Sequence record: PV796108.1
Direction: 5' to 3' (one strand)
Length of the DNA stretch: 64,000 bases
Positions 7,953 to 34,787 of the stretch are shown here, piece after piece. Position numbers and translations under genes: made by a program. A model generated the notes under the pieces. That model was not told the origin of the DNA. It saw only the letters and a list, made by a program, of their open reading frames with translations, and searched no databases. Numbering within the stretch: position 1 is the first letter of the stretch; every line of letters starts with the position of its first letter.

Positions 7953-8585
7953 ATGTCATACTTTATACAGTTCCCTGATGAGGAACTATTAACAGAGGAA
8001 GAAAAAATGATTAAAGACAATATTGGTCTTGTTAAGAAATCAATTGAACAGATATTTCCGAACATCCAATTGATTGCTGATAATCATCGCATGGACATCG
8101 AAGATTTATATCAAGTTGGTATGACTGGATTATGGTTAGCAGCAAGACGCTTTGATACGAGCAGGAATTTAAAATTCTCTACATATGCAGTAGCCACAAT
8201 TAAAGGATACGTATACAATCATATACGTGACAGTGGATATATGCTCAAGTTTCCTGCTGAAGTTCCAGCTAAAATTAGAAAACAGTACAAGGTTGTTGGT
8301 GAACTTGTAAAAGATGCGAGTGGCGAAATCATTAACTTAGAAGAGTTTATGCCATTAGTTGAACCACCAAGCAAGACTGTTGATAGAAAACTAGATGCTC
8401 TTCGTCATCGAGAAGAACTTCGACCAATGTTTTCAGACAAAGAAAATACTGTTATTGATTTAATGGTAGAAGGTGTTGAGCTGAGAGATGTACATAAACG
8501 ATTAGGTGTATCTCGTCAGTTAGTTAACCTTCGCAAACAAAGTATCGTAAAGAAAATGAAAGCAAGACAATTGTTACCACAGTAA
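7953..8585 (+). CDS. RNA polymerase sigma factor (sigma70 family, SigF/SigB-like region 2)
   Basis: NIGLV...DIEDLYQVGMTGLWLAARRFD..RNLKFSTYAV..IKG; C-terminal region-4 HTH. Confidence 0.9.
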   Translation: MSYFIQFPDEELLTEEEKMIKDNIGLVKKSIEQIFPNIQLIADNHRMDIEDLYQVGMTGLWLAARRFDTSRNLKFSTYAVATIKGYVYNHIRDSGYMLKFPAEVPAKIRKQYKVVGELVKDASGEIINLEEFMPLVEPPSKTVDRKLDALRHREELRPMFSDKENTVIDLMVEGVELRDVHKRLGVSRQLVNLRKQSIVKKMKARQLLPQ

Positions 8586-19313: not shown

Positions 19314-19492
19314 TAATATTCCTCCGTGTATTCGTCGCTAATTTCGAAAGCATGGCTTTCACAAATCGGGCAACAAGGGGAGAGTTCCCAACTCTCCACA
19401 TAATATTGGAATGTACACTCCAAGCATGTAACCCACTCATTCTCAGGGGTCCCTTTTACCCATTGTATCTTTTGTTTACGTTTCGAGGTCAC
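19313..19492 (-). CDS. 59-aa zinc-ribbon protein (not in ORF track)
   Basis: GTG start overlapping phoH stop, RBS aggag; CLEC...CPIC. Confidence 0.7.
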   Translation of the reverse strand: MTSKRKQKIQWVKGTPENEWVTCLECTFQYYVESWELSPCCPICESHAFEISDEYTEEY

Positions 19493-20784
19493 AATAGTTC
19501 TACTCCTAACTGTGCTAGTCTAGAGCGTACAACACTTTCCATTGTGATATGTCCTACAATATCTTGACCTTGTAATCTATCAATTACATATGATAGTCCG
19601 TTAGAACCAGGAGTCAGTCGGTGATTGTCAATCTGCTTTGGACTTAAATCACCTAAGAAGATAACTTTCGACCCTTCACCAGCACGAGTGATTATTGTAG
19701 CAGCTTCATGAGCTGTCATGTTCTGGCAATCATCTACGATAATGATTTGGTCAGGTAAGCTTCGACCACGGATGTAAGTCATCGCTTCGAGTTCTAGAGT
19801 GCCACTTTCAACCATATGATAAATCTTTTCCTTTGTTGGAAGGTTTGGATTTAAGTCCTTTGGTGTGTAATCAGTTAAGAGGTAGTCTAGAGCATCGAAT
19901 GTGCTCGCCATCCAATCTTCTAGCTTTTCTAGTTTGTTACCAGGTAGGTAACCAATGTCATTACCTACAGCAACTAGTGGACGCATAATCGTTATCTTTT
20001 TGTAGGTTTCTCTGCGGAAGGTTTGTTCTAAAGCGCAAGCCAGTGCCAGGAGTGTTTTACCACATCCACTTGGTCCAATCGCAGTTACGAAATCTATATC
20101 TTTGTTCATGCAAAGCTCCATAAGGAAAGCTTGCTCGTCATTGTTTGATTTAGGTTTTACTTTCCATGCTTCATAGCTACGTTGAAGTGGAACGATTAAG
20201 TTTTTACTTGGGTCTTGAATGCCTTTACCGATTACATTTTCATATTCGTCCAGTAAATATACCAGCTGGTTTGATGAAATGTCATCTGTTGGTCGTAATT
20301 GACCTGCTCTGTTCCACATATCAATTTGCTCAGGTGTTAATACAAGTGATGTTTTGCCAGTATACAATTTGTTTGCATCGACATCGTTAGGAGCGAAGCT
20401 TGTGCTATCAACTTCTAATGCGTCTGCAATTACTCTTGCATGAATATCTTGTGAGACTAATGTAGCATCAAATTGTTTTGCTGTTAAGATGATGTCGTAG
20501 TCAGGTTTTGATGGGTCAATCTCTTCATCTTTTAAGTAGATTTTGATAATGTGCTCACCAACAGCTACGCCTTCACGTAAGTTTCCTTGGCTTCTTAATT
20601 TATCAAGGAATCTGATAGCAGCACGAGAGTATTCATGTTTAGACTCATTGCCTTTTTTGAAAGTGTCCACTTCTTTTAGTACCACATGTGGTAAGACTAA
20701 AGTTGTTGGTTCTGTAAAGCTTTCAAGGACTGCTTCAAATGTTTGTTCTAATAATACATTTGTGTCTAAAACAACGTTCTTCAT
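19489..20784 (-). CDS. phoH: PIN-PhoH fusion (PhoH2/YlaK-like)
   Basis: PIN: VVLDTNVLL, VLKEVD, PDYDI, SQD; PhoH: GPSGCGKT, EALTYIRGRSL-like, IIVDDCQN, LGD..QID. Confidence 0.92.
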   Translation of the reverse strand: MKNVVLDTNVLLEQTFEAVLESFTEPTTLVLPHVVLKEVDTFKKGNESKHEYSRAAIRFLDKLRSQGNLREGVAVGEHIIKIYLKDEEIDPSKPDYDIILTAKQFDATLVSQDIHARVIADALEVDSTSFAPNDVDANKLYTGKTSLVLTPEQIDMWNRAGQLRPTDDISSNQLVYLLDEYENVIGKGIQDPSKNLIVPLQRSYEAWKVKPKSNNDEQAFLMELCMNKDIDFVTAIGPSGCGKTLLALACALEQTFRRETYKKITIMRPLVAVGNDIGYLPGNKLEKLEDWMASTFDALDYLLTDYTPKDLNPNLPTKEKIYHMVESGTLELEAMTYIRGRSLPDQIIIVDDCQNMTAHEAATIITRAGEGSKVIFLGDLSPKQIDNHRLTPGSNGLSYVIDRLQGQDIVGHITMESVVRSRLAQLGVELL

Positions 20785-22348: not shown

Positions 22349-22384
22349 TAAGAGGGGGGCTTATTAGCTCCCCTTATTTTTTAT
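22349..22384 (+). terminator. intrinsic terminator
   Basis: AGAGGGGGGC-ttatta-GCTCCCCTT followed by ATTTTTT. Confidence 0.75.
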
Positions 22385-26600: not shown

Positions 26601-27266
26601 GTGAGTAAAGTTAGTAGAAAGCGTGGAGCAATACCAAAAGCAAAAGATTTAACAGGTCAACGATTTGGGAAGTTACTTGTACTGGAAAGTGTAGACCGTA
26701 CAATTACTGGACATGTTACTTGGAAATGCAAGTGTGATTGTGGAGAAGTAAAAACGATAGTAGGTAAATACCTACGAGGTGGAGACACGAAAAGTTGTGG
26801 TTGCTTACAAAAGGAAATGTCAGCAGTTCGTTTAGCTGATTTATCAAAAGAGCGTTTTGTAAAACGTGCTGGTAAAAAGCCTGAAGACTTTATCGGTGAA
26901 ACATTTAACTACTTTACAATAAAAGATGTAAGCACAAAGGATGGGAGAACAAGCTGGATTGCTAAGTGTGGATGTGGTAATGAGCGCAATCTCATTTGTC
27001 ATGCACTTACAAGCGGTAGAAGATTAAGTTGTGGTTGTGTACACAGCGTACATAAATTAACTGACAATCAAATTTCACAACTCACAATGAATTATCTTTC
27101 TTACAAATGGCACATCATTACAACAACTAAACAAGGAAAGCCGTGGGAGGATTCGTTCGATCTATTTGCGGACTGGGCTTTAGAATCTGGATTTGAATTA
27201 GGTAAACACTTAATGCTTCATAATGTATATCTATCTCATTCACCAGACAATTGTTATTGGGAGTAG
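26601..27266 (+). CDS. homing-endonuclease-type protein: two DLTG.RFG.L/CxCDCG repeats plus degenerate HNH-like C-terminus
   Basis: DLTGQRFGKL...WKCKCDCG...TKSCGC twice; W..SF..F..WAL..G...PDNCYW tail lacking the usual DRID motif. Confidence 0.7.
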   Translation: MSKVSRKRGAIPKAKDLTGQRFGKLLVLESVDRTITGHVTWKCKCDCGEVKTIVGKYLRGGDTKSCGCLQKEMSAVRLADLSKERFVKRAGKKPEDFIGETFNYFTIKDVSTKDGRTSWIAKCGCGNERNLICHALTSGRRLSCGCVHSVHKLTDNQISQLTMNYLSYKWHIITTTKQGKPWEDSFDLFADWALESGFELGKHLMLHNVYLSHSPDNCYWE

Positions 27267-27278
27267 GAGGCAAAGGCT

Positions 27279-28160
27279 ATGGCAGTAAAAGAACAAGTGA
27301 AGTTTAGACCAGACTTAGAAATCGTATCGGGGTGGCATTACGGAAGTGGTGTTCGCCCACCTATTCATGTTGGTTTCGGTATGAAGGAAACACTTGAAAG
27401 AGACTATCGTATTCGTGGTTATTTTGTTAAAGGTGGCGTATATATTTTATACGGGGGAAATGATGAAATCTTATATGTAGGAAAGGCCACGAACTTCGTA
27501 GCTAGATTACGAGAGCATGTGAAGCAGAATCCATATAAGATACAAGAAGAGATTGTTCGTGTTGAGATGATGAACGATGAGAATATGATTGAACTTGAGC
27601 CATATCAATATGCAGTAAAGAAGGGTATTAGCCCACTTACATTAATGCAAAGTTATTGGATTTACAAATTGAAACCGAAGTACAACCTCAAGTACAACAA
27701 GACTCACCTCAATGAATATTTAAGTGAAGGAAGTAAAAAAGTGAAAAAATATAACAGAAAATTAAACAACGATAAGTATGATGCAATGATTGGTAAGAAG
27801 TATTCACGATTAACAGTGAAGAGTTATTACAGAAAAGATTACTATGTTTATGTAAGATGTGAATGCGATTGTGGTAATTTGAAAGAAATCCAAGCAAGTA
27901 ATGTTTGGAAAGGACTTACAAAGAGCTGTGGTTGTATTTTAAGAAAGGACTTAACAGATAAACAAATTACGAATCTTGTTATCGCTGAACTACAAGCAGA
28001 ATGGAGTCATTATACTAAGCATGGTGATATCTCATTATGGGACAACAACTTTAATGAATTTGCAAATTGGGCATTAGAAACAGGTTTCGAATTAGGAAAC
28101 CGACTTGTTCCTAAAGACAGCAACGAATCACTTAGCTTAGATAATTACAATTGGGTTTAA
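27279..28160 (+). CDS. GIY-YIG nuclease fused to the same Cys repeat and degenerate C-terminal domain
   Basis: GVYILY...ILYVGKATN...RLREH; CECDCG...TKSCGC; WDNNFNEFANWALETG. Confidence 0.75.
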   Translation: MAVKEQVKFRPDLEIVSGWHYGSGVRPPIHVGFGMKETLERDYRIRGYFVKGGVYILYGGNDEILYVGKATNFVARLREHVKQNPYKIQEEIVRVEMMNDENMIELEPYQYAVKKGISPLTLMQSYWIYKLKPKYNLKYNKTHLNEYLSEGSKKVKKYNRKLNNDKYDAMIGKKYSRLTVKSYYRKDYYVYVRCECDCGNLKEIQASNVWKGLTKSCGCILRKDLTDKQITNLVIAELQAEWSHYTKHGDISLWDNNFNEFANWALETGFELGNRLVPKDSNESLSLDNYNWV

Positions 28161-28178: not shown

Positions 28179-28529
28179 GTGATATCACACGGAAGTCTTC
28201 ATGCTATCAAACCAAAAGATTCAACAAAAGAAATTGTGAAACGTATTCCACTTGAAAAAGCAGAAGGATACGGCCAATATCTTTTAGAGGGAAAAGAAAA
28301 ATATTCTATTACTACTGTAGAAGGAACAACTAGAAGAGTAATAGAAGTGTTGCAACAATGTGCAGATGAATATGGTATTTATATTTCATGTAATTATAAT
28401 GAACCAGGCGGCTCTGAATGGGGAGAGAGTCGTGAAATATCTATTACATTTGGTAAGGTTGGTTTACATGATGGGATTAATTTGGGGACGAAGCTAGGGG
28501 GATTTGAAGAGGATGAAGAAAACGCATAA
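28179..28529 (+). CDS. hypothetical protein
   Basis: GTG start after aaagggggtga RBS. Confidence 0.65.
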   Translation: MISHGSLHAIKPKDSTKEIVKRIPLEKAEGYGQYLLEGKEKYSITTVEGTTRRVIEVLQQCADEYGIYISCNYNEPGGSEWGESREISITFGKVGLHDGINLGTKLGGFEEDEENA

Positions 28530-28872
28530 GCAAATGTTACATCTGATTGCAGCAGCTGGACTAAGCGTATCTGTATTATCTGGTTGCTCTGGTTATGATG
28601 CAGAGCAAGAACAAAAGAAAGATGATATCTCACAATGTGATCCAAAGAAAGATAAGTGTGAGAAACGTGAGCGTTCTGGTGGTGGGTTCTTCTGGGTACC
28701 GATTACTGGAAGTACAACAAGTGGTGGAACATCTGGGGCAACCTCAGGTTCTACTTCTGGTGTAGTAAGTGGAGGAGGAAGTAAAGCTTCTACATCATCA
28801 GGAGCTACTTCAGGAAGTACATCTGCACCATCAAGCGGTATTGGCACGGCAAAGGCTCCAGCAGGTTCTTAA
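28513..28872 (+). CDS. lipoprotein with Ser/Gly/Thr-rich tail (YgiB/DUF1190-like context)
   Basis: signal peptide with lipobox LSGC; C-x6-C; GGFFWVP; repeated SGATSGSTS. Confidence 0.8.
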   Translation: MKKTHKQMLHLIAAAGLSVSVLSGCSGYDAEQEQKKDDISQCDPKKDKCEKRERSGGGFFWVPITGSTTSGGTSGATSGSTSGVVSGGGSKASTSSGATSGSTSAPSSGIGTAKAPAGS

Positions 28873-28900
28873 TCTGTTGGAGTATACAAGGGGGAGAAAC

Positions 28901-30121
28901 ATGTTCAATCAAGAAAAGTACATTAAAGAGTTCTACGAAAAGAATGATGCATTAGTTGAAAAAGGTTTTTCATGGGGAACGCTTTACGAGAATGATGAAT
29001 GGAATCAGTACATGAGCTTAACTCCTATTCCTCTTTCAGAAGTTGCATATGAAAATATCTTGAAAGCAACTGCACAAGTTGCACGAGTGATTCAAAAGTT
29101 CTATTGGCATGTCTGGGATACTCCAGAAACCATGAACCGATTAAAGTTAAACCCACATGTGCTTGATGCAATTAAAGGTGGCAAAGATAATCTATTTAGT
29201 TATCTATGTAGATTTGATTTTATTATTAACGGTGATGAAATTAAGCTAATTGAGATTAATGCTGATACACCAACTGGTTTAGTTGAACCAAGTATTGCAA
29301 ACCGTTATTTAATAGAAGGAACTGATTACAAACATTTAAATAAGCATGAAGCATGTTTAAAAGATATGTGGTTCCAGTTCATGAAAAAGTACAAGATAGC
29401 TGACAGTGATTATATCTACTTCACAAGCTATGATTGGCATGATGAAGACAAGGAAACAACTGAAATGATTATGGAGCAATGTATTCATCCAAATAAAGAG
29501 TACATTGGGGTACAAGACATCTTAGTAAATGAGCAAGGTATATATGATGCTTACGGCAATCCTATTAAATATTTATACCGATTATATCCTCTTGAGTATT
29601 TACTAGATGACAAGGATGATGATGGTCGCCCAATTGGTCGATGGTTCTTAAAGCATATAGCAGATAAGAAAGTCATCATGTTGAATCCTCCATCTTCATT
29701 GATTCCACAACATAAAGGATTCTTATCTTTATTATGGAATGAATATGAAAAAGGAAACTTGTTCTCGGAAGAAGATAAGGAAGTTATTAGCAAGTACTTC
29801 TTACCTACTTACACGACACCAGGTTTATTAAAAGACTATGTAGAGAAACCAATCTTTGGTCGTGAAGGTGGGGGTATTCGTATTGTCACAAAAGATATGA
29901 AAGAAGAAGACAATACAGAATACTATCGCAATCAAGATATGATTTATCAGCAGTATGTGGAAATGCCGAAACAGGTTGTTGATACATGGGATGGACCATA
30001 TGAAGGACGACTACTTGTTGGGTCTCACTTCATTGGTGGTAAGCCAGCTGGTTTATTCTATCGTATTGGAGAACCAATCACAGGCAACTTATCAATGTTC
30101 GCACCAATCGGAATTAAATAG
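28901..30121 (+). CDS. glutathionylspermidine-synthase-family ATP-grasp ligase (YgiC/YjfC-like, no amidase domain)
   Basis: RFDF, LIEINADTPTG, YRLYPLE, KPIFGREG, YQQY; start MFNQEK (RBS ggggag). Confidence 0.9.
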   Translation: MFNQEKYIKEFYEKNDALVEKGFSWGTLYENDEWNQYMSLTPIPLSEVAYENILKATAQVARVIQKFYWHVWDTPETMNRLKLNPHVLDAIKGGKDNLFSYLCRFDFIINGDEIKLIEINADTPTGLVEPSIANRYLIEGTDYKHLNKHEACLKDMWFQFMKKYKIADSDYIYFTSYDWHDEDKETTEMIMEQCIHPNKEYIGVQDILVNEQGIYDAYGNPIKYLYRLYPLEYLLDDKDDDGRPIGRWFLKHIADKKVIMLNPPSSLIPQHKGFLSLLWNEYEKGNLFSEEDKEVISKYFLPTYTTPGLLKDYVEKPIFGREGGGIRIVTKDMKEEDNTEYYRNQDMIYQQYVEMPKQVVDTWDGPYEGRLLVGSHFIGGKPAGLFYRIGEPITGNLSMFAPIGIK

Positions 30122-30132
30122 GGGGAAACGAA

Positions 30133-30858
30133 ATGGTTATCAATTTAGAAAAAGCAACGAAGGACGCAAAAATCGTACTAGAGAAAAAGGAAATCTTTGG
30201 AGAGAAAGCGAATATTAAATTAGTGGTAGACCATTCAGGTTCTACAGGTTCTTTCTTCCGACATGGAGTTGTTCAAGCAACCATTGAACGTATTCTTGCT
30301 GTTGGTATGAACATGGATTCTAACAAGTCAATTGAAGTATATGCTTTCAACGGAAACGTTACATACATCGGAGAAGCAAATGAAAGCAATATCGAGGACT
30401 TTGTTAATAAAGTCTTCTTGAAGAAGGTTCGTGTTGAAGGTGGTACTTGTTATTCACCTGCAATGCAAGCTGTCGTACAAGATGTAGAGAAAGAACCTAA
30501 AGCACCTGGTCTTCTATCTAAGCTATTTGGAAAGAAAGAAGAGCCGACAATCGACAAGGACTTACCAACACTTGTATTCTTTGTTACTGATGGTGAGAAC
30601 TCTGACCAAAATGTTACAACATCTTACATGCAAGAAGTTTCATCGAAGCCAATCTTCTGGCAGTTCATCGGGATTGGTTATGACAAGATGCCATTCCTAG
30701 ATAAGCTGGATACGATGCAAGGTCGTGTTGTTGACAATGCAAACTTCATCCGTGCAAAAGATATTCAGAATATGACCAACAAAGAACTATACGAAGAAAT
30801 CTTAAATGAATATCCGTTATGGTTGAAGGAAGCACGCAAGCTGAAAATCACAAAATAA
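30133..30858 (+). CDS. vWA domain protein (vWA-TerF-like)
   Basis: MIDAS DHSGS...GGT...VTDG; FWQFIGIG; RVVDNANF. Confidence 0.85.
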   Translation: MVINLEKATKDAKIVLEKKEIFGEKANIKLVVDHSGSTGSFFRHGVVQATIERILAVGMNMDSNKSIEVYAFNGNVTYIGEANESNIEDFVNKVFLKKVRVEGGTCYSPAMQAVVQDVEKEPKAPGLLSKLFGKKEEPTIDKDLPTLVFFVTDGENSDQNVTTSYMQEVSSKPIFWQFIGIGYDKMPFLDKLDTMQGRVVDNANFIRAKDIQNMTNKELYEEILNEYPLWLKEARKLKITK

Positions 30859-30874
30859 TTGGGGAGGAACATTC

Positions 30875-31225
30875 ATGTTTAAAAGTTTAGAATGCGTATT
30901 AGTACCAGTTACAGATGTAGAGAAAGCTGTTGAGTTTTATCTATCAATGGGATTAAAAGAATCTTGGCGTATTGAACGAGAAGGTGGCTCAGTTCTGGTT
31001 GGATTAAAATTCCCAGACAAGAGAAGTTCTGAACTCGTTCTATCGTACAAAGGTGCTGTTCCAGAAATGGAAGTAGAAATTGCTGTTGGTAGTGTTCTTC
31101 ACACAGTGAAAAAATTGAAGAAGAATCCTGATGTAAAAATCATCGTAGAGCCTTTTGAAACAGAGTCAGGTAATGTAGCCGTATTCGAAGCACCAGATGG
31201 AAATGTATATGTAATTGTGGATTAA
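30875..31225 (+). CDS. VOC/glyoxalase-family protein
   Basis: VLVPVTDVEKAVEFYLSMG...FEAPDGN. Confidence 0.85.
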   Translation: MFKSLECVLVPVTDVEKAVEFYLSMGLKESWRIEREGGSVLVGLKFPDKRSSELVLSYKGAVPEMEVEIAVGSVLHTVKKLKKNPDVKIIVEPFETESGNVAVFEAPDGNVYVIVD

Positions 31226-31245
31226 GAAATAGGGGGAAACAACCA

Positions 31246-31941
31246 ATGCAAACAAAGAAGTTTTTATTTAATCGTAATCCTTTAAATATTTTACATGAAC
31301 GTAAGATTGAGCAGCCAAGTGTAGAGGTGTTGAAAAACACCCCTGCTCTTTGGAATGCTTCATTGGATGATGCAATTAAGTATGGCGGAGAGTTAACTCG
31401 TGCTGCACTAAGAGCAATGAACTTACAGTTTGATCGTAAGTATGTGGTAGTAGATACAAAGGTACATATGTTGATGCCTAATATGTGTCCAGCTATTCCG
31501 AACTGGCATAGTGACGGTGTACCAAGAGGAGCACAACTTCTTCCTGAAGCAAAAGAGCCACCAAATATATTTGCTCAAGAAGAAATGACAGATAGTAGAT
31601 TTCACCTACTTGTCACAGGTGAGCATTGCTTAACTGAGTTTCTTGATGGCCCGACATTGTTGGATGTTCCAGCTGAACCAGACACAGGTCTTTACTCTAT
31701 GGTGAATGAACAAGTTCGTCAGTTAATTAAAGATGGAAAGAGAAAGGTTATTACAGCTCCTAGTTGTACGCCAATTGAGTTTGATTGGTATGACATTCAT
31801 CGTGGTGTTGAATCTACAGGACATGAGTGGCGTTTCCTGATTCGTGTAACAGAAACAGACCATATGCCACCACAAACGGATTTACGTAAAATTATTCGTA
31901 CACAACAGCAAGTGTATGTGAAAAAAGATTTCGGTTGGTAA
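31246..31941 (+). CDS. 2OG-Fe(II) oxygenase-like protein
   Basis: PNWHSDGVPR (HxD), distal IHRG (His), R.LIRV. Confidence 0.7.
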   Translation: MQTKKFLFNRNPLNILHERKIEQPSVEVLKNTPALWNASLDDAIKYGGELTRAALRAMNLQFDRKYVVVDTKVHMLMPNMCPAIPNWHSDGVPRGAQLLPEAKEPPNIFAQEEMTDSRFHLLVTGEHCLTEFLDGPTLLDVPAEPDTGLYSMVNEQVRQLIKDGKRKVITAPSCTPIEFDWYDIHRGVESTGHEWRFLIRVTETDHMPPQTDLRKIIRTQQQVYVKKDFGW

Positions 31942-31953
31942 GGGGGAGTCATT

Positions 31954-32298
31954 ATGTCATCACGAGTATATGAAATGAAGCCTGGGGAAAAAATCCCTGA
32001 AAAGAGATATGTAGATGTACCAGAGAATGATATTTACAGAAAGCATAATATTGTAGATGGCGAAGCTTACATTGGTGTATATGATATTTTCGAACAACGA
32101 TTAGCCAAGCTAATTCATGATTTTGAACAAGAACATGGATTAGAAGTAGTCGCAAGTTTACAGCATTCTTATTATTCTAATGTTCATGACCAAAAGATTG
32201 TTTTACGTTGCAAGGAATTGGTACCAGAAGGTTCATTCGTTATAAGGAAAGAAACCGTTAAAGAGTGGGGGACTATGGAACATGGAGAGAACGGTTGA
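31954..32298 (+). CDS. hypothetical protein
   Basis: 114-aa ORF with RBS aggggga. Confidence 0.7.
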   Translation: MSSRVYEMKPGEKIPEKRYVDVPENDIYRKHNIVDGEAYIGVYDIFEQRLAKLIHDFEQEHGLEVVASLQHSYYSNVHDQKIVLRCKELVPEGSFVIRKETVKEWGTMEHGENG

Positions 32299-32875
32299 TA
32301 AAGAAATAAGACCATTTCTCAAAGAGCATCTTCATACATTGTATGGGGATGTTCCTATTTATGAGGAGTTAGCCATTGCATACCATAGTACGGTTGTAGA
32401 TATGGTTGTATTAGCACAAGGGGAATTAATTGGATTGGAAATTAAAAGCGGTAAAGACAATCTACGCCGACTTCCAACTCAAATCAAAAATTATGACAAG
32501 GTATTCTCACGTAATTATATTGTCGTAGATGACAACCACCTAGAGAAAGTAGAAAGAATGATTCCACATTACTGGGGAATTATACTTGCTTATCATGATG
32601 GCACAGGAGATGTATTCATTGAACTCTATCGTGATGCAGAAGAGAATCCGAACCAAGATGCTTATTGGGTTCTTGAGTTATTATGGAGAGATGAATTAAC
32701 GTATCTAATGAAGAAACATGAAATGTACCGTGGTATGTCAAAAGCTAGAATGGTAGAGAGGCGCCGTAAGTTATTGCTTCATCTATCATTATATGATACT
32801 GTACAAGAAGTCATTCATTTATTACCGCAACGAGATGGATGGAAAAGCAACAAAGAGGAGGAAGTAGAAGTATGA
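32282..32875 (+). CDS. sce7726-family PD-(D/E)xK nuclease-like protein
   Basis: EEL...VDM...GLEIKSGKDNLRRLPTQ..NY.KVF...WGI...LELLWRDEL. Confidence 0.75.
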   Translation: MERTVDKEIRPFLKEHLHTLYGDVPIYEELAIAYHSTVVDMVVLAQGELIGLEIKSGKDNLRRLPTQIKNYDKVFSRNYIVVDDNHLEKVERMIPHYWGIILAYHDGTGDVFIELYRDAEENPNQDAYWVLELLWRDELTYLMKKHEMYRGMSKARMVERRRKLLLHLSLYDTVQEVIHLLPQRDGWKSNKEEEVEV

Positions 32876-33460: not shown

Positions 33461-33490
33461 AAGAGGGGGCTTCGGCTCTCTTTTTTATTT
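33461..33490 (+). terminator. intrinsic terminator ending the + strand block
   Basis: AGAGGGGGC-TTCG-GCTCTCT plus T tract. Confidence 0.85.
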
Positions 33491-33525
33491 GTGTTTCATT
33501 ATGTATGGTGGAAGTGTGCCGCTAT

Positions 33526-33562
33526 AAAAAGAAAAGACGACCTTAAAGGTCGCCTTTCTTTT
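33526..33562 (-). terminator. intrinsic terminator ending the lysis operon
   Basis: minus strand GCGACCT-tta-AGGTCGT followed by CTTTTCTTTTT. Confidence 0.7.
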
Positions 33563-33779
33563 CTTCTTGTGCTGCTTCTTCAGCAGGGTCTTTGATGCCA
33601 GTACCGATAGATGGGTTGTTGATAACACCAGCTAATACAAGAACATAAAGAACTTTTTCTACATAGTCATTGTAATGACCTAAGTCAGTTAAATAACCTG
33701 CATCCATAAGTCCCATTCCAATTAAACCAGCTACAGCTACCCATAGTACATAGTTTTGAAAACGGCTTTGAGTCTTCAT
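33543..33779 (-). CDS. holin (small, two transmembrane helices)
   Basis: SRFQNYVLWVAV...VLVLAGVINNP directly after endolysin. Confidence 0.85.
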   Translation of the reverse strand: MKTQSRFQNYVLWVAVAGLIGMGLMDAGYLTDLGHYNDYVEKVLYVLVLAGVINNPSIGTGIKDPAEEAAQEEKKGDL

Positions 33780-33797: not shown

Positions 33798-34787
33798 TTA
33801 CTTTACTTTTACGTACTCTGGAGCAGCAGTGATGTAAATACCAGATTTGGTTTTATACATCTTAGAGCCATTCACAGTTAGTACTTCAGTGATTGTTAAG
33901 GCTTCTCCAGCGTTTAGCTGTTTTACTTTGTCGTTCCAGTTCGCTGAACCATATACCCAAAGTCCATCAACTAAAACCACCACAAGTTTTCCTACTTCAC
34001 TAGCTTGTAGCGCTGGGGTAAAATCCACGAAGTCCTTGATAATCCAAGCGTCACCGCCGACATTGTACCATCCGTTTTGTTCGCCCCATACTACATAAGT
34101 CTCGCCTTGACGAGCTTTACCGTCACCTTGGTAACCAGTACCAGGAGCGATATCATAGTTTGTGCCTGGACCTTTACGGATGTTTACTACATCACCTGTT
34201 ACAGTTAATGTTCCGTAACGACCATCAGATGGAGGAGCTACAGTACTGCCACCGCCAGTAGAACCGCCGCCGCCAACAGTTTGACCTGTTAATGCTTTAA
34301 CAATAGAAGTAGCAATCTTGTCTGTATTCCATTTACCCATGTCTCCAGCATTGTCGATGAAGCCCATCTCAATTAGGATTGCAGGTGCAGCCGTGTTGTT
34401 TAACACATAAAGGTCAGTACGAGGTTTAGCTCCACGGTTAGACCAACCAATGTCATCAGACAATTGTTTAGAAACCTTAGCAGCTAAAGCTTGTTGATCG
34501 TAGTAACAAACCTCAACACCATTTGCAGTCCCATTGAAAGCATTTAAGTGAAGCGAGATGTCTAAGTCTACCTTATGAGCGTTACACTTTTTCACGATGT
34601 TTACTAGGTTAGCAGATTGAGTAGAACCCACTTCATCAGTACAGTCATAAACTGTATGACCAAGGCTACGAAGTTTCGCAATTAAAGCATCCTTTACCTG
34701 ACGGTCAAGTAAATGCTCTTTCCCATATTGAGAGTTCGCCCCTTGTACGATTCCGTTGTGACCACCGTGTACGTTATAAGTTGCCAT
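33798..34787 (-). CDS. endolysin: N-acetylmuramoyl-L-alanine amidase (Amidase_3) + SH3b + C-terminal binding domain
   Basis: HGGH...E...SLHLNA...LIEMGF; Gly-rich linker; VNIRKGPGTNY...WGEQNGWYNVG. Confidence 0.93.
   Translation of the reverse strand: MATYNVHGGHNGIVQGANSQYGKEHLLDRQVKDALIAKLRSLGHTVYDCTDEVGSTQSANLVNIVKKCNAHKVDLDISLHLNAFNGTANGVEVCYYDQQALAAKVSKQLSDDIGWSNRGAKPRTDLYVLNNTAAPAILIEMGFIDNAGDMGKWNTDKIATSIVKALTGQTVGGGGSTGGGSTVAPPSDGRYGTLTVTGDVVNIRKGPGTNYDIAPGTGYQGDGKARQGETYVVWGEQNGWYNVGGDAWIIKDFVDFTPALQASEVGKLVVVLVDGLWVYGSANWNDKVKQLNAGEALTITEVLTVNGSKMYKTKSGIYITAAPEYVKVK

Follow-up and report, generated by a model that had tools for sequence, protein, structure and literature searches.

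The five-gene row of phage Edson

The window analyzed here is a stretch of DNA of 64,000 nucleotides that is identical to bases 1–64000 of the genome of Bacillus phage Edson (PV796108.1), a 233,813 bp genome from a phage that infects Bacillus cereus. A preliminary description of the window had picked out a row of five co-directional genes, encoding a lipoprotein, an ATP-grasp ligase, a von Willebrand factor A (vWA) protein, a vicinal oxygen chelate (VOC) protein and a putative oxygenase, and had interpreted them as a single operon that might ligate and then oxidize a peptide or amine. We find that the individual genes were described soundly but that the five do not constitute one conserved system. 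What is conserved is the lipoprotein together with the ligase, while the vWA, VOC and oxygenase genes are independent phage cargo.

The five open reading frames (ORFs) are all on the plus strand and coincide with the GenBank coding sequences gp0520–gp0560. They encode, in order, a small lipoprotein of 119 aa with a lipobox (gp0520; 28513..28872), which is the partner of the ligase; a YgiC/YjfC-type ATP-grasp acid–amine ligase of 406 aa (gp0530; 28901..30121); a stand-alone vWA-TerF-like protein of 241 aa with a metal ion-dependent adhesion site (MIDAS) (gp0540; 30133..30858); a small VOC protein of 116 aa with the glyoxalase/bleomycin-resistance fold (gp0550; 30875..31225); and a 2-oxoglutarate (2OG)-Fe(II)-oxygenase-like protein of 231 aa (gp0560; 31246..31941). 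Each of the five starts is preceded by a G-rich Shine–Dalgarno sequence of the GGGGG or GGAGG type, and the intergenic gaps within the row are 11–28 nt. The coordinates, ribosome binding sites and tight packing given in the preliminary description are thereby reproduced, and the identities that it had assigned to the five products are borne out by family profiles, motifs and fold models.

The ATP-grasp ligase

The gp0530 protein matched the GSP_synth family (PF03738) with an E-value of 9e-58 and a score of 196.7 bits (cutoff 29.3) over residues 16–403 of 406. It belongs to phrog_6215, which carries the PHROG label of auxiliary metabolic gene. No CHAP or other amidase domain was found in gp0530 by a Pfam scan, in agreement with the earlier reading of the gene. 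In a profile search of the PDB, the best solved-structure matches were E. coli YgiC (7uk8; E = 5e-15) and YjfC (7uk6; E = 2e-14), which supports the resemblance to the ygiB–ygiC and yjfM–yjfC pairs that had been pointed out from the sequence of the window. The R-x-D, E-x-N-A-D-T-P and K-P-x-x-G/S-R-E-G blocks, previously listed as intact, align with those of YgiC and YjfC. Residues D106, E118, N120, D122, T123, P124, K316 and G320-R321-E322-G323 are invariant in 25 ligase homologues, and R104 is conserved in at least 90%.

Homologues of the ligase are present in phage vB_BceM_WH1 (hereafter WH1; 86% identity) and in a 229-kb metagenomic relative, L011 (71%); Edson and these two are referred to below as the Edson clade. 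In a neighbor-joining tree, the Edson-clade ligases form a branch of their own beside sequences from the B. cereus group and from large contigs. Scans of IMG/VR with the ligase yielded only one further phage lineage.

B. cereus-group hosts use bacillithiol rather than glutathione as their thiol. On the NCBIfam equivalog for the bifunctional glutathionylspermidine (Gsp) enzyme (NF007801), gp0530 scored 36.6 bits against a cutoff of 882, and it is accordingly unlikely, judging by its sequence, to be a true Gsp synthetase, as had been suspected. YgiC itself is without Gsp synthetase activity (PMC11762307, PMC12568646, PMC12506659). The preliminary description had treated the substrates of YgiC and YjfC as unknown. 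This still applies to the physiological substrate, but both enzymes were reported in 2023 to act as peptide–spermidine ligases (cited in PMC11762307; see also PMC12568646).

The lipoprotein and its C-terminal tail

At its N terminus, gp0520 combines a basic n-region and a hydrophobic core with an L-S-G-C lipobox. Next come an acidic stretch that holds two cysteines, a GGG-aromatic patch, a tail rich in Ser, Gly and Thr, and a distinctive C-terminal dozen residues. The protein matched no Pfam, NCBIfam or PHROG family, even when Pfam matches with E-values of up to 10 were considered.

In all of the eight loci first inspected (those of Edson, WH1 and L011, a B. mycoides chromosome, a B. subtilis phage-like replicon, two giant phage contigs and Halalkalibacter), an ORF with a lipobox is located immediately upstream of the ligase gene. 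A scripted survey was then made of 109 ligase hits, mostly from a set of 80 cellular genome loci, and a lipobox ORF was found by the ligase at 87 of them. At nearly all of the 87, this ORF ends between −61 and +88 nt from the start of the ligase, with a few distant or spurious cases. The hits that have no lipobox ORF are mostly a second ligase paralogue located after a DUF350 gene in loci from alkaliphiles, together with a few single loci. The lipoprotein and the ligase are thus a conserved pair.

The pair is also found in phages that infect other hosts. In Aeromonas phage 25, the upstream ORF085 is a genuine member of DUF1190 (E = 7e-22). ORF051 of Ralstonia phage RSL1 gave a weak match to DUF1190, contains a G-F-G motif and ends in Gly-Gly. 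In Bacillus phage FADO, the upstream partner is gp31.

Several variations on this arrangement were observed. The alkaliphile loci (L009 3884–8365 and about 20 loci, L043–L071), from Halalkalibacter and Alkalihalobacillus, have the order lipoprotein, ligase 1, DUF350, ligase 2, followed in the two Halalkalibacter loci inspected by a K+ channel gene; only the first of the two ligases is preceded by a lipoprotein. In bacteriophage DSS3_VP1 (L103 751–2910), the place of the lipoprotein upstream of the GspS-like ligase is taken by a K+ channel-like Ion_trans_2 gene, and a nicotinamide phosphoribosyltransferase gene is close by. In the B. subtilis phages of the FADO/PJN02 group (L006 7276–7896; L104 3046–3666), the pair is followed by a gene for a PghP-like poly-γ-glutamate hydrolase (PF05908; E = 7e-59) and is preceded by a run of Macro, NADAR and Gad2-like genes.

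The only strongly conserved part of the lipoprotein is its short C-terminal tail. A G-(I/M/F/L/V)-G motif is present within the last 26 residues in 82 of the 87 partner lipoproteins, and all 82 terminate in either Gly (49) or Ser (33). The tails fall into three types, which track the host groups: a cereus type with the ending A-G-S, an alkaliphile type with F-G-G and a Paenibacillus type with S-G-G. Among the last 13 residues of the Edson lipoprotein, 11–12 positions are identical to those in 27 B. cereus-group homologues, while identity over the remainder is about 32% (median), a figure that is itself inflated by low complexity. Tails that share the C-terminal dozen residues of the Edson type were found only in B. 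cereus-group chromosomes and in the three Edson-clade phages. Because of this restricted distribution, the Edson pair appears to have been taken from the B. cereus-group lineage.

The vWA, VOC and oxygenase-like proteins

The third gene product, gp0540, matched PF10138 with an E-value of 1.2e-55 and 189 bits (cutoff 29.4), and belongs to phrog_5359. Its MIDAS, which had been described as intact, comprises residues D33, S35, S37 and D153, all of which are invariant among 31 homologues. There was no TerD fusion, and no TerB, TerC, TerD or TelA domain was found among the scanned ORFs from 20.9 to 33.5 kb or named in the annotation of bases 1–45000. In other Bacillus phage-like contigs, homologues of the vWA protein are solitary genes amid small ORFs. 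In one 426-kb contig that has both a vWA gene and a lipoprotein–ligase pair, the two are about 165 kb apart. We conclude that gp0540 is a separate, widespread phage protein, which probably serves at the membrane as a module for metal-dependent protein binding through its MIDAS. Two vWA homologues (L016 3094–3366; L017 4249–4965) are located near a Tad2-like gene and directly past a gene for an Apyc1-like (anti-Pycsar) metallo-β-lactamase, which hints that the family lives in counter-defense gene neighborhoods.

The VOC protein, gp0550, matched PF00903 with an E-value of 1e-6 and 29.4 bits (cutoff 20.6). Its predicted model had a predicted local distance difference test (pLDDT) score of 93, and Foldseek returned VOC proteins at a probability of 1.0, all of them generic; the paired β-α-β-β-β fold of the superfamily is thereby confirmed. 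The homologues are proteins of about 121 aa from Bacillus manliponensis, Paenibacillus and others, a Bacillus/Paenibacillus subfamily in which C7, E53, E68 and E97 are invariant. We could not assign a more specific function, since the PDB profile and Foldseek searches gave only uncharacterized proteins, antibiotic binders, glyoxalase I and methylmalonyl-CoA epimerase, and gp0550 matched no NCBIfam glyoxalase model. The top PDB profile match of the family was weak (E = 0.004), to the trypanothione-dependent glyoxalase I 2c21; in this alignment, the only significant one, the invariant C7 replaces the first His metal ligand. Such a match is suggestive beside a ligase of the GspS family, and could be taken to favor a common pathway. 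However, we judged it to be a coincidence, because the VOC gene is absent from every ligase locus other than those of Edson and WH1.

The last gene product, gp0560, has no Pfam family, nor was any found consistently among 92 relatives, but it was placed in phrog_1843 with an E-value of 1.7e-73. In an alignment of 93 sequences, H88, D90, H185, R196 and R200 are invariant. H88-x-D90...H185 constitutes the HxD...H motif noted previously and corresponds to the facial triad of 2OG oxygenases, and R196, about 10 residues past the distal His, to the 2OG-binding Arg. The predicted model had a pLDDT of 96, and its top eight Foldseek matches in the PDB were all 2OG oxygenases, with a probability of 0.96–0.99 and template modeling (TM) scores of only 0.34–0.43; GriE, EctD, proline hydroxylase H11 and HalD were among the matches. 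No specific function could be derived from these results: there was no sequence match in the PDB, the fold matches to amino-acid hydroxylases were at low TM score, and the matches in the viral library were all to uncharacterized proteins.

Distribution of the five genes

Gene order was compared among the three Edson-clade phages. WH1 keeps the lipoprotein, ligase, vWA and VOC genes and has no oxygenase gene. In L011, the lipoprotein and ligase are followed by an unrelated gene of 119 aa, then by the vWA gene, and then directly by a gene of the sce7726 family; neither a VOC nor an oxygenase gene is present at the locus. Three of the five genes are thus common to all three phages, and the VOC gene is found only in Edson and WH1. 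At the WH1 locus, the stop of the VOC gene runs straight into the ribosome binding site and start of the gp0570 homologue, and the same junction sequence recurs in Edson only past the oxygenase gene. The oxygenase is therefore a precise one-gene insertion or deletion, that is, a single-gene cassette, between Edson and WH1.

Each Edson protein was also used as a tblastn query against the 80 ligase loci and seven others. Homologues of the vWA, VOC and oxygenase proteins were found only in the two sister phages; the 80 cellular loci, which extended 5 kb to either side of the ligase, had none. In a collection of 50,697 phage records, the oxygenase family is present in 469 (mainly T4-like coliphages and phages of Aeromonas, Mycobacterium and Gordonia), the vWA family in 280 (including rV5-like coliphages and phages of Streptomyces, Pseudomonas and Caulobacter) and the ligase family in 50. 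These three families are distributed independently, and the ligase and vWA genes are adjacent only in Edson and WH1.

The preliminary description had named a lack of joint conservation in related phages as grounds for refuting its reading, and this is what was observed. Since the families are not found together in WH1, in L011 or at the 80 cellular loci, and since their phage distributions are independent and the vWA gene and the pair are about 165 kb apart on the one contig with both, we rejected the five genes as a conserved system, and the ligate-then-oxidize pathway is not supported.

The five genes matched no PADLOC model. An assignment of the row to defense or anti-defense was consequently not adopted, the only match in the region being that of the sce7726-family gene further downstream.

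The co-directional string and its surroundings

Tight packing, common direction and the pattern of ribosome binding sites are not peculiar to the row, but extend to the flanking genes on both sides. Upstream, gp0510 overlaps the start of the lipoprotein gene by 17 nt, and downstream, gp0570 begins 12 nt past the oxygenase gene. Only two strong terminator-like sites were seen on the plus strand: a hairpin at 22352..22375, which opens an 11-kb co-directional string, and a hairpin at 33461..33484, which closes it and faces a minus-strand block with holin and amidase genes. There are none inside the string. Because the packing continues on both sides and the terminators are found only at 22352 and 33461, the five genes are an arbitrary slice of this string, which also encodes a Rad52-like protein, a primase, a DnaB-like helicase and two homing-endonuclease-like ORFs. 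No broken genes were met in the region.

The homing-endonuclease-like ORFs, at 26601–27266 and 27279–28160, are located directly upstream and belong to the HNH-type phrog_374; the second additionally contains a GIY-YIG domain. At this spot there is one gene of 285 aa in WH1 and there are different genes in L011, so this position also turns over. In L011, a LAGLIDADG-type ORF is found ahead of a shortened DnaB_C gene (131–2105), pointing to a further mobile insertion within the replication genes.

On the downstream side, the ORF at 32282–32875 encodes a sce7726-family protein (NF033832, E = 2.6e-39; phrog_984) that matched the PADLOC model PDLC02989, 'cll', with an E-value of 4e-17, the sole match to a defense database in the region. 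The gene is kept downstream in all three Edson-clade phages; the L011 homologue is labeled PF26915 Phage_P4_cII. Face-to-face terminator-like hairpins (33461–33558) separate the plus-strand string from the minus-strand lysis block (33543–33779 and 33798–34787), which encodes a holin and an N-acetylmuramoyl-L-alanine amidase, as annotated in WH1 and found by Pfam in L011. Elsewhere in the window, the annotated products include a SigG-like sporulation sigma factor (7953–8585) and a PhoH-family protein (19489–20784), typical host-takeover cargo of large Bacillus phages.

Interpretation of the locus

We favor the interpretation, at a probability of about 0.62, that the row consists of independently acquired accessory genes in the replication-phase string of a jumbo phage, and that its unit is the lipoprotein with the ligase. 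From the likeness to YgiC and YjfC, we infer that the ligase, in the cytoplasm, would activate a peptide-type carboxylate with ATP as an acyl-phosphate and amidate it with a polyamine, most likely spermidine, which is made by Bacillus. The lipoprotein would be exported and anchored by its lipid to the outside of the membrane. It would take part, together with the ligase, in a function related to envelope or polyamine stress, of which the phage presumably brings its own version into the infected cell. The VOC and 2OG-oxygenase-like proteins are separate cassettes.

Several points weigh against this interpretation. All three Edson-clade phages have the vWA gene close to the ligase, and there may be a functional link between the two that is specific to the clade. 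Since the three genomes are close relatives, however, the gene order that they have in common carries no independent weight either way. The 80 genome loci were chosen by their ligase motifs and are dominated by a few genera. With the ligase in the cytoplasm and the lipoprotein exported, the two would have no obvious way to cooperate. Finally, the relationship of the lipoprotein to the DUF1190 family (PF06693), to which YgiB belongs, is an indirect one. Direct membership of gp0520 could not be demonstrated by the Pfam search described above, in which Salmonella YgiB gave an E-value of 4e-55 as a reference and ORF085 of Aeromonas phage 25 the value already quoted. When profiles were compared with hhalign, a pooled profile of Bacillota lipoproteins matched YgiB at a probability of 19%, with only the signal peptide aligned. 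With subset profiles, the alkaliphile lipoproteins matched YgiB at 84%, and those of the B. cereus group and phages matched the alkaliphile ones at 80%, giving only a transitive link to DUF1190. At the same time, gp0520 has the lipobox, the position directly upstream of a GSP_synth gene, the Cys pair, the Gly-aromatic patch, the G-x-G motif and the small C-terminal residue. It can therefore be called DUF1190-like by architecture and position, and, going by the profile statistics, a possible member of the family.

We considered the possibility that the substrate of the ligase is the lipoprotein itself, i.e., that the C-terminal carboxylate of the partner is amidated with a polyamine before export, resulting in a surface lipoprotein with a cationic tail. 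GspS, the archetype of the family, has as its target the carboxylate of the glycine at the end of glutathione and provides a precedent for such a reaction. YgiC and YjfC are reported to accept peptides (as cited in PMC11762307), and the two genes adjoin in almost every locus. The conserved tail would fit a substrate well. It has the G-hydrophobic-G motif in 82 of 87 lipoproteins, all of these with a Gly or Ser end, it is far better kept in Edson (12 of 13 positions) than the remainder of the protein, and, going by its composition, it is predicted to be disordered and therefore accessible. However, the B. cereus-type tail terminates in Ser rather than Gly, a conserved tail could equally well be an epitope for binding or sorting, and adjacency alone identifies no substrate. 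The modification would also have to take place ahead of Sec export, the enzyme being cytoplasmic and the protein exported. Because of this topological problem, we regard modification of the lipoprotein as unlikely. If it did occur, it would represent an undescribed C-terminal modification of lipoproteins, common to YgiB–YgiC-type pairs from E. coli to Bacillus, and would imply that phages of several host phyla have repeatedly captured a two-gene cassette to remodel the envelope of the infected cell.

Another explanation is that the ligase is an auxiliary metabolic enzyme that buffers or sequesters spermidine as small peptide conjugates, in which case the lipoprotein would be merely a co-inherited neighbor. 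This would agree with the PHROG label and with the observation that many phages encode polyamine enzymes, gss homologues being clustered with homospermidine synthase (PMC9992855). However, lipoprotein and ligase occur together in phages with widely differing hosts, which argues that the pair rather than the enzyme alone is under selection and makes this explanation distinctly improbable.

Phage lipoproteins are a classic device of superinfection exclusion, and the Edson lipoprotein, possibly with the vWA-TerF-like protein, might alter the envelope in such a way that entry of other phages is blocked. The anti-defense genes next to the vWA homologues in other phages would be consistent with such a role. 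So would the proposals, made in PMC7824862, that TerF-type vWA proteins form sub-membrane barriers and that jumbo phages might use Ter components against superinfection. On the other hand, there are no Ter partners nearby and none of the five genes matched PADLOC; furthermore, the host chromosome already carries its own lipoprotein–ligase pair, and the pair is consequently not specific to phages. Exclusion is therefore more doubtful still.

The five-gene system of the preliminary description, in which the vWA protein would serve as a scaffold and the VOC and oxygenase proteins would tailor a ligated peptide, amine or surface protein, is consistent with the compact arrangement of the row and with the synteny of four of the five genes in WH1, but is largely refuted by the distribution of the genes (only three of the five in all three phages, the single-gene turnover of the oxygenase, 0 of 80 cellular loci with any of the three extra genes, independent occurrence in 469, 280 and 50 phage records) and by the equally tight packing of the flanking genes, and we consider it very improbable.

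The interpretation as a lipoprotein–ligase pair among unrelated cargo has a number of consequences. It removes a false lead, as there is no new five-enzyme pathway at this locus. It also documents how accessory genes turn over, cassette by cassette, among jumbo phages that are very closely related. YgiB–YgiC and YjfM–YjfC pairs are widespread and are linked to envelope stress, and the Edson locus sharpens the question of their unknown physiological substrate. Because the pair travels into phages, the tail is conserved and Edson keeps the tail type of its host, this host-specific C-terminal tail is a checkable candidate for the missing substrate or for an epitope recognized by the partner.

Comparison with known systems

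The stand-alone gp0540 shares the PF10138 domain and an intact MIDAS with TerF of the Ter systems. It differs from TerF in having no TerD fusion and no TerB, TerC, TerD or TelA nearby, and in belonging to a phage-wide family.

The Edson ligase has the ATP-grasp synthetase domain and motifs in common with GspSA and with trypanothione synthetase. Unlike GspSA, it is without the N-terminal CHAP amidase, scores far below the equivalog cutoff and operates in a host with bacillithiol as its thiol.

The gss genes of Aeromonas phage 25, Ralstonia phage RSL1, Achromobacter phage Motura and Bacillus phage FADO belong to the same PHROG as the Edson ligase, and an upstream lipoprotein is present in phage 25, RSL1 and FADO as well. 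The identity between these ligases and that of Edson is 25–44%, and the adjoining vWA gene is a feature of the Edson clade only. The gene neighborhoods differ too: in Motura, gss is joined to homospermidine synthase, whereas in the FADO group the pair is joined to the PghP-like poly-γ-glutamate hydrolase.

PspA envelope-stress systems go together with operons of a GspS-like ligase, DUF350, a DUF1190 lipoprotein and a K+ channel (Ravi et al. 2024, PMC11237479). The same set of ligase, lipoprotein, DUF350 and K+ channel was seen in the Halalkalibacter and Alkalihalobacillus loci, whose ligases are 40–43% identical to that of Edson. In contrast, Edson has only the lipoprotein and one ligase, with no PspA, DUF350, DUF2491 or channel gene in the neighborhood.

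The closest known system is formed by YgiB–YgiC and YjfM–YjfC of E. coli and Salmonella, in which the order is the same, with the lipoprotein immediately 5′ of the ligase, and the ligase is of the same Pfam family. Salmonella YgiB resembles the phage lipoprotein in its lipobox, Cys pairs, Gly-rich aromatic/hydrophobic patch, G-F-G near the end and terminal Gly-Gly; YgiB-type and phage lipoproteins also have in common a G-F/I/M-G motif close to the C terminus and a small last residue. The differences are that the Edson ligase is only about 25% identical, that the phage lipoprotein is half the length and below the DUF1190 threshold, that the host of Edson is Gram-positive, with no outer membrane or TolC context, and that the genes are located on a lytic jumbo phage. 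The Edson pair is a new, phage-borne and compact member of the YgiB–YgiC type.

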